From positions 40,300,001-40,364,000 of the forward strand of contig NC_083284.1 in NCBI RefSeq assembly GCF_963506605.1: 64,000 nucleotides of DNA, read 5' to 3'. Below the pieces are notes generated by a model that was given only the letters and a program-made list of their open reading frames with translations, was not told where the DNA came from and ran no database searches. Of this stretch, positions 38,111-38,616 are shown in pieces (position 1 is the stretch's first letter; each line of letters opens with the position of its first letter). This DNA is from Zootoca vivipara. Its lineage: Eukaryota. The position numbers and the translations under genes were made by a program.

Positions 38111-38616
38111 AAGGACAGATGCTAGGGTTTTTTGCACCCTAGGCGAGATAACCTTCTGCCCCCCCCTGGGCCTGGCCCAGCCTTCACCCCCTTCCCTTCC
38201 CAGTGCCCCTCCGGCTTACCTGGGACGTCAACGGCTCGGTTGCTCTGGCCGCCCTCAGGCTCAGCCACGGACCCCCGGGCGCAACAGCAGCTGCTCCTGC
38301 CTGCCCGAGAAGTAGAGCATGGTGACCGCGCCCGGAGCCGAAGGCCCGGCTCTGGCGCGCGCACCACGGGAAGGGGCTGCTCTCGCCCTACGTGTCCTCC
38401 ACACGCTGCTGCCCTCGGCGCTCCAGGCATGCCTGGGCTGCACCAGCGCCGCTGCTGCCGCCTGCCCTGGATGCGGGTAGGTGGCGTCGGGATGCAGCGG
38501 CCGCACGGCAGAGCGAGTCCTGTGAAGCCAGCAGCGCTCCCCATCATGCCAGCGCCCCCTCCATTTTGGCAGCCTAGGCAACTGCCTAGTTTGTCTTAAT
38601 GGACACGCCAGCCCTG
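38111..38616. mobile_element. hAT-like element (CAGGGCCGG-type), innermost layer, carrying a captured pappalysin exon fragment
   Basis: Right end CCTAGGCAACTGCCTAG...ACGCCAGCCCTG; degenerate left end AAGGACAGATGCTAGGGTTTTTTGCACCCTAGGCG; TSD not recognisable. Confidence 0.6.
38220..38545 (-). pseudogene. PAPPA2: Transposon-captured, frameshifted fragment of a pappalysin (PAPPA2-like) first coding exon
   Basis: Minus strand reads [44 protein letters not shown], then after a deletion/frameshift PEGGQSNRAVDVP-G|GTAAGC. Human PAPPA2 as recalled: ILYFSGRRERLLLRPEV...[35 protein letters not shown]...WLRAEGGQRSPAVITG. Upper boundary is approximate. Confidence 0.8.

Follow-up and report, generated by a model that had tools for sequence, protein, structure and literature searches.

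In plants, cut-and-paste transposons that capture pieces of genes provide a major route of exon shuffling. The Pack-MULEs of rice and maize, for instance, are DNA transposons that have been amplified and hold fragments of genes in which the exon-intron structure is preserved. Helitrons, as described in bats and maize, also capture and amplify exon-plus-intron fragments at the DNA level. In animals, gene-fragment capture is thought to be rare and nearly always single-copy: a survey of 100 animal genomes reported 370 Pack-TIR elements, with hAT as the commonest carrier (208/370), and only four multicopy families, three from frog and one from alligator, the example shown having three copies (Tan et al. 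2021, Nat Commun 12:4280, PMC8277862). These animal elements (Pack-TIR/Pack-hAT) are non-autonomous TIR transposons with a host-gene fragment copied as DNA (PMC8277862), and it is accepted that they acquire this fragment by gap filling or template switching. The main text of that survey mentions no lizard (PMC8277862), and our literature search found no paper on hAT gene capture in lizards or squamates. The window that we analysed, a stretch of 64 kb, holds an element of this known kind, a Pack-TIR/Pack-hAT, which is unusual in its copy number. An earlier note on the same DNA had proposed that a hAT transposon captured, as DNA, a PAPPA2-like coding exon together with its native splice donor and adjoining intron-like bases. 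This core reading is supported by the results below for a fragment of the exon, the carrier being non-autonomous. On the whole, we think it probable that a PAPPA2 DNA fragment was captured in a short non-autonomous DNA transposon, multiplied, and came to be nested in elements of a MITE family, here called M.

Most of the first coding exon of PAPPA2 (pappalysin-2), from about codon 39-45 to the last exon base, is present as a decayed copy on the minus strand of 38220-38545. Translation of this strand reproduced exactly the two peptides that had been read before: one frame of 38620-38264 gives ...DGERCWLHRTRSAVRPLHPDATYPHPGQ..., and a second gives SVAEPEGGQSNRAVDVPG, then GTAAGC, the final exon base being 38220. 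The assignment to PAPPA2 was made by four independent searches, in which the cargo pieces of different reading frames were searched separately and never joined into one peptide. A 32-aa piece, compared with the 177,635 sequences of the PDB, had as its sole match at E<=10 the Pappalysin-2 entry 8sl1_A, at LPILYFSGRRERLLLRPEV. A 94-aa piece of frame 1, searched against 1.84 billion representatives, retrieved two proteins: the top match, P0001, was set aside as a repeat protein of low complexity, and P0002 matched residues 3-91 of the query with an E of 4.8e-4. The latter is a 178-residue ORF on a 2.4-kb Logan contig and, to judge from its PDB matches (E 4.3e-15 with Pappalysin-2, 8sl1_A, versus 2e-8 with Pappalysin-1, PAPPA1), it is a PAPPA2 exon-1 product; among its relatives are a Gekko kuhli protein and three lizard-type ORFs of 177-181 residues (P0003-P0006). 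When these five squamate-type exon-1 products (P0002-P0006) were compared by tblastn with the 64 kb, the only match in the window was 38545-38273, with E from 1.8e-15 to 3.7e-20; moreover, the second cargo piece, EPEGGQSNRAVDVPGK at 38262-38215, aligned in tblastn with a 15-residue stretch of squamate exon-1 products, the colinearity spanning about 95 codons. The presence of a PAPPA2 exon fragment in the window is thus confirmed, and with it both the pappalysin origin of the cargo and the previous preference for PAPPA2 over PAPPA, which agrees with the two E values of P0002.

As for the likeness to the gene itself, the cargo follows the PAPPA2 first coding exon colinearly between DGE(R/P)CW and the final exon base, a range that takes in LYFSG...LLLRPG and PEGGQSN, and its donor position is equal; it differs by the absence of codons 1 to about 38, by a stop, frameshifts, a deletion of 13 codons and an insertion of one, and by not being followed downstream by the remainder of the gene. 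Other searches gave no match: phmmer against the PDB with the 115-aa frame-1 piece and with the 25-aa second piece, Pfam with four cargo pieces (no domain found), a homologous-protein search with a 121-aa ORF (nothing at E<=10), and Rfam over 36500-40500. The G+C content is 65% in 38000-38500 against a background of 40-45%, and the long ORFs that cross the cargo, two on the minus strand (141 aa and 121 aa) and one on the plus strand (155 aa), were taken as by-products of GC-richness.

The exon part of the cargo ends at a splice donor between 38220 and 38219, which reads G/GTAAG from the exon side. In all of the 12 PAPPA2 exon-1 ORFs compared, homology ends directly after ...IIAG, at the same place as the GT of the window, which places the donor at the native exon boundary, in agreement with the exon end proposed before at 38220. 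Beyond the donor, the intron-1-derived sequence, starting with GTAAGC, occupies 38175-38219 (minus strand) and is covered by a single-copy contig of another organism (organism C), whose range over this part, 38175-38261, was deduced from match-end values at 38213 and 38223. In organism A, the species of the window, the intron position 38213 is likewise spanned by at least 15 distinct contigs. According to the organism C contig the intron portion is about 45 bp, and the estimate of about 60 bp in the earlier note has to be shortened. Since intron sequence is kept, the copy was made at the DNA level; the view that this was not retrocopying therefore gains from the donor and the roughly 45 bp of intron, which are shared with the single-copy contig of the relative.

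Only a part of the exon was copied. The first homologous residues are DGERCW, at about codon 39-45 in the squamate products, so that the copy has neither start codon nor signal peptide; tblastn over the 64-kb window found no match to PAPPA2 codons 1-38 (signal peptide) upstream of the cargo. The furin site RTRR that had been read in the cargo is a wrong-frame artefact: the parental frame gives SSVEDT*GESSPFP, matching SSVEDTWEESN.FP of the squamate products, a comparison which points to a compensated +1/-1 frameshift pair and to a TGG>TAG stop. At 38262-38269 (minus strand), comparison with P0003-P0006 located a 13-codon (39-bp) deletion together with a 1-nt insertion, and the organism C contig splits at the same site; the 13 missing codons lie between two CTGAG repeats, and the extra base stands after GTC (+1 at about 38269, versus the gecko product). 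A deletion had indeed been noticed here, with a size of about 12 codons that is now corrected to 13, plus the inserted nucleotide. Moreover, the SNRAVDVPG stretch holds one extra codon with respect to the squamate exon-1 products. Without a start codon, and with frameshifts, a stop, the 13-codon deletion and heavy CpG decay, the cargo is a dead fragment, and it has no functional PAPPA2 reading frame into the LamG-like domain.

The extent of this decay could be followed by comparing copies. At 18 of the 18 listed sites the majority letter of the organism A copies is that of the organism C contig; at 15 of the 18 the majority letter is in a CpG and that of the window copy is not, and 12 of these 15 are transitions of the CpG-decay type. 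The majority letters convert VTM-LYFSG into the VAA-LYFSG of squamates, and the final Pro codon into the native Ala (VPG into ..AG). The sole plausible activity of the cargo would be that of a passive source of a consensus donor and of GC-rich DNA. Its homology to PAPPA2 breaks off sharply on meeting the repeat arms, at 38541-38545 on one side and 38175 on the other, and the exon-1/intron-1 sequence of 38175-38545 as a whole lies between the arms of a carrier, here called P, inside a composite element N and the MITE M.

To follow these repeats, copy number was gauged by the summed contig k-mer depth of public runs, X1 for organism A and X14 for organism C, with a baseline on the unique left flank of 17.2 and 46, respectively. 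The outer element M is a 143-bp hAT-like MITE with the termini CAGAGCTATTTTTC... and ...GAAAAAAGCACTG. Its first 35 bp (CAGAGCTATTTTTCTAGAAAAAGAGGTGCCGGAAC) are found at 38049-38083 on the plus strand, with 94% identity to the start of a second M copy (63325-63291), and its remaining 100 bp, ending with ...GAAAAAAGCACTG, at 38701-38800 on the plus strand, as a colinear continuation from 38083 when aligned with that copy. Outside the CAG...CTG ends, the identical octamer AGCAAGAG stands at 38041-38048 and, in perfect match, at 38801-38808. The second copy, uninterrupted, 154 bp long and flanked by the duplication CTCCTAGG, is at 63172-63325 (minus strand) and was used as the family reference. 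Upstream of 38049 hundreds of contigs carry unrelated flanks, and the summed depth on the first part of M is about 50,000 against 17 on the single-copy flank; by this measure there are thousands of M-family copies in organism A and likewise in organism C, and RNA reads fall on the family. The orthologous M insertion is also present in organism C and in a third organism (organism B). No transposase ORF was found in 38049-38800.

Within M lies the composite N, which is 609 bp long (38084-38692, minus strand), has the ends CAGTGC...GCACTG and carries the P arms and the cargo. It is flanked by GCCGGAAC (38076-38083) and GCCAAAAC (38693-38700), each one base away from GCCAGAAC, which occurs once at the matching place of the 63-kb M copy; the comparison with this copy identified GCCAAAAC as the right 8-bp target duplication of N. 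Removing 38084-38700, that is N and one copy of the duplication, makes the outer M colinear with the second M copy, and in public contigs other M copies pass directly from 38080 to 38698, omitting 617 = 609 + 8 bases. The 5' part of N, 76 bp at 38617-38692 on the minus strand (CAGTGCCTTTTTTCTAATAAAATAGGTGCCAGTACTCACC...), is itself M-like when aligned to the 63-kb copy. At least 56 organism C contigs match 38617-38692 and are preceded there by a different conserved sequence, ...CCAGGGGGTACTCAAGGGTACGCA, which suggests an M-related subfamily of about 110 bp as the precursor of N, the P arms and the cargo appearing to replace its middle.

The inner carrier P is less sharply bounded. Its 5' arm, 38542-38616 on the minus strand (CAGGGCTGGCGTGTCCATTAAG..., starting with CAGGGCTGGCG when read from 38616 to 38542), includes a hairpin at 38560-38603 and reaches a summed depth of 27,688 in X1 and 482,961 in X14, against 17 and 46 on the single-copy flank. 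Contigs of organisms B and C, both species other than that of the window, have loose ends at 38616/38617, which makes 38616 a real boundary of the family. The 3' arm (38095-38174, minus strand), with the palindrome GCCTAGGGTGCAAAAAACCCTAGC, was recognised by a weak inverted likeness to the 5' arm; its terminus is degenerate and its outer limit uncertain (38095-38113), and the bin 38147-38223 is deeper than the cargo in both runs (6,203 in X1; 471 versus 37 in X14). An 8-bp duplication around P was sought at both candidate 3' ends, 38095 and 38111, and none was found. The 5' arm opens with CAGGGCT, the same 7 bases that terminate the M copy at 63172. As neither a target duplication nor a clean 3' terminus was found for P, these 7 bases are its one direct link to hAT, and from them we infer that P, too, belongs to this superfamily. 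Within the 64-kb window, neither the P arms nor the cargo occurs a second time.

The terminal inverted repeats of hAT elements are short and begin with YARNG. Ends of this type were observed in M (CAGAGCT.../...AGCACTG), in the second M copy (CAGTGCT.../...AGCCCTG), in N (CAGTGC.../...GCACTG) and at the 5' end of P (CAGGGCT), and 8-bp duplications as in hAT elements flank M (AGCAAGAG), the second M copy (CTCCTAGG) and N (GCCGGAAC/GCCAAAAC). The hAT-type ends previously placed at 38111 and 38616 can be retained for 38616, a true repeat boundary, and not for 38111, which is ill defined; similarly, the hAT character of the element stands, and the 8-bp duplications belong to the larger units 38084-38692 and 38049-38800. 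That the flanks of the cargo are repeated transposon ends agrees with the high contig depth of the arms. The flanks of 38084-38616 make up an inverted and not a direct repeat, as both sides are M-family sequence in opposite orientation. In addition, a 25-nt inverted repeat with 88% identity (38066-38090 and 38610-38634) extends over flank and element terminus (GAGGTGYCGGWAC followed by CAGKGCT), which indicates that N and P both abut M-like sequence at the same position; this shared abutment may mark a preferred insertion or template-switch site in the M family.

The cargo itself is repeated in organism A. Over 38224-38531 its summed depth in X1 is 1,737-2,985, and a single site is covered by as many as 52 distinct contigs, which suggests about 100 copies in this species, a figure to be read only as an order of magnitude since summed contig depth is a crude measure and not itself a copy number. 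The listed organism A cargo contigs differ from the window copy by 10-12%, and copies in general by 10-15%, which is more than the divergence of about 4% between the flanks of organisms A and C; CpG decay would explain, in qualitative terms, much of this excess. In organism C, by contrast, the depth over the cargo is 31.6-36.9 (X14), and a single contig of 3,074 bp was found, about 90% identical to the window. It matches 38175-38261 and 38270-38541 only, is broken at the 39-bp deletion and is without P arms. Since the P arms are repeated about 10,000-fold in organism C, a Pack copy there would have alignable arms, and we read the contig as most likely the relative's own parental PAPPA2 gene, exon 1 with intron 1; in principle it might instead be a founder element with arms that have diverged beyond alignment. 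In organism B, whose flank is 99% identical to the window, a contig holds the cargo and a P arm and continues with a different sequence beyond 38616, which makes it a copy in another context. The idea that the element could spread the exon and its donor is thus borne out by a cargo copy number that is of the order of a hundred.

These data also allow us to weigh other explanations. Gap filling without transposition could have placed the cargo in a resident transposon, its copies then arising by segmental or tandem duplication. Most animal Pack-TIRs have been argued to arise by gap filling and to stay single-copy (Tan et al. 2021, PMC8277862), and the lack of a detected target duplication for P would suit this origin. 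Nevertheless we consider it unlikely, because at least 50 distinct contig variants, which diverge from the window copy by 10-15%, agree with old copies that are dispersed, the organism B contig switches flank exactly at the P terminus 38616, and the window copy came inside N with a clean 8-bp duplication. It is far less probable that the cargo is the genuine PAPPA2 locus, or a locus-level pseudogene invaded by MITEs, even if the kept exon-intron junction and the homology over most of exon 1 would be found there too: in this species the sequence is about 100-fold repeated, homology ends abruptly at 38541-38545 and 38175, at the repeat arms, codons 1-38 are unmatched upstream, and the whole piece stands inside an element bounded by target duplications within another MITE. 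For the same reasons, its copy number and its nesting in MITEs, it is not the syntenic PAPPA/PAPPA2 locus that the earlier note had considered as an alternative.

A retrocopy of PAPPA2 mRNA landed in a MITE has in its favour that exon sequence is present and nothing more, and processed pseudogenes are likewise dead partial gene copies away from their locus. Such an origin can be practically dismissed, as the GT of the donor and about 45 bp of intron are kept, in common with the single-copy locus of the relative, and exon 2 sequence, poly(A) and an L1-type duplication are all absent at the cargo, which lies between transposon arms. It is just as improbable that GC-rich DNA of low complexity produced the likeness to PAPPA2 by accident. 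The absence of PDB matches for the 115-aa and 25-aa pieces, the blank Pfam result and the low-complexity nature of P0001, the top match of the large search, might be taken in that sense; against this stand the tblastn E values down to 3.7e-20 with several squamate products over about 95 colinear codons, an exon end placed as in those products, and the majority letters of the other copies, which restore VAA of SVAALYFSG and the ..AG exon end.

Returning to capture and amplification in a transposon as the preferred origin, the following course can be proposed. A 367-bp piece of PAPPA2 from the lizard lineage, from about codon 40 of exon 1 through the donor to about 45 bp of intron 1, would have been copied as DNA into a carrier with the P arms, whose CAGGGCT terminus is common with the hAT-like MITE family; the capture likely took place at a P element by template switching or gap repair. 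The cargo-bearing element would then have multiplied to roughly a hundred copies in the lineage of this species, presumably by transposition with a hAT transposase acting in trans. Later, P and its cargo may have been packaged into an M-type element by the same kind of event, giving the 609-bp composite N. N inserted with an 8-bp duplication into the 143-bp M, which is flanked by an 8-bp duplication of its own.

With respect to the animal Pack-TIRs, this locus is different in that the PAPPA2 cargo appears to be repeated about 100-fold, and in that the cargo unit is packed in a second element with other ends, which in turn is nested in a third. Pack-MULEs are biased to the GC-rich 5' ends of genes, as is the case with this first-exon cargo, but they have Mutator duplications of 9-11 bp and long TIRs, unlike the 8-bp duplications and short CAG... 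ends observed here, and the host here is a vertebrate. Helitrons are without TIRs or target duplication, insert at AT and have a 3' hairpin and a CTRR end, and none of these marks was found here. If the family of about 100 copies is true, hAT-type elements of vertebrates can amplify host cargo on a plant-like scale. We put forward, tentatively and as the less probable case, that it is one family of an unusually productive Pack-hAT system of the lizard lineage, which would capture the GC-rich first exons of numerous genes and amplify them to tens or hundreds of copies; the PAPPA2 family, with about 100 copies and a consensus donor, would then be the largest multicopy vertebrate Pack-TIR reported, amplified after the split from a relative diverged by about 4%. 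An amplification that one species has and a close relative lacks would give a dated natural experiment, and such a comparison would let one test how captures arise and whether the scattered donors get used. At a practical level, the cargo copies are a source of false PAPPA2-like exon calls in genome annotation.

The use of the donor at 38220 had been proposed for a check by RNA-seq, which was done on about 6% of one organism A run (X21): zero reads fell on the cargo (38224-38531) and no spliced joint was seen at 38220, in a sample too small to show silence, and the reads near the cargo were only on the high-copy MITE parts.

Other repeats were observed in the window. Adjoining the outer M, 38801-38898 belongs to another repeat family, with a summed depth in X1 of 7,000-14,000; it ends at 38898, and its other copies show a conserved continuation. 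At 39071-39532 there is a very high-copy repeat (summed depth of 20,000-145,000 in X1), present in organisms A and B and with RNA reads on it; its depth is essentially zero in organism C, though contigs of C cover the adjacent bins, which suggests a lineage-specific repeat family or insertion. Finally, a 1.5-kb Charlie-type hAT is found at 20037-21512, which has CAYGGGTGTCAAAC ends (CACGGGTGTCAAAC.../...GTTTGACACCCATG), is flanked by CTCTAGAT as an exact 8-bp duplication, and contains a CpG-rich interior with CCAAT and GC boxes.
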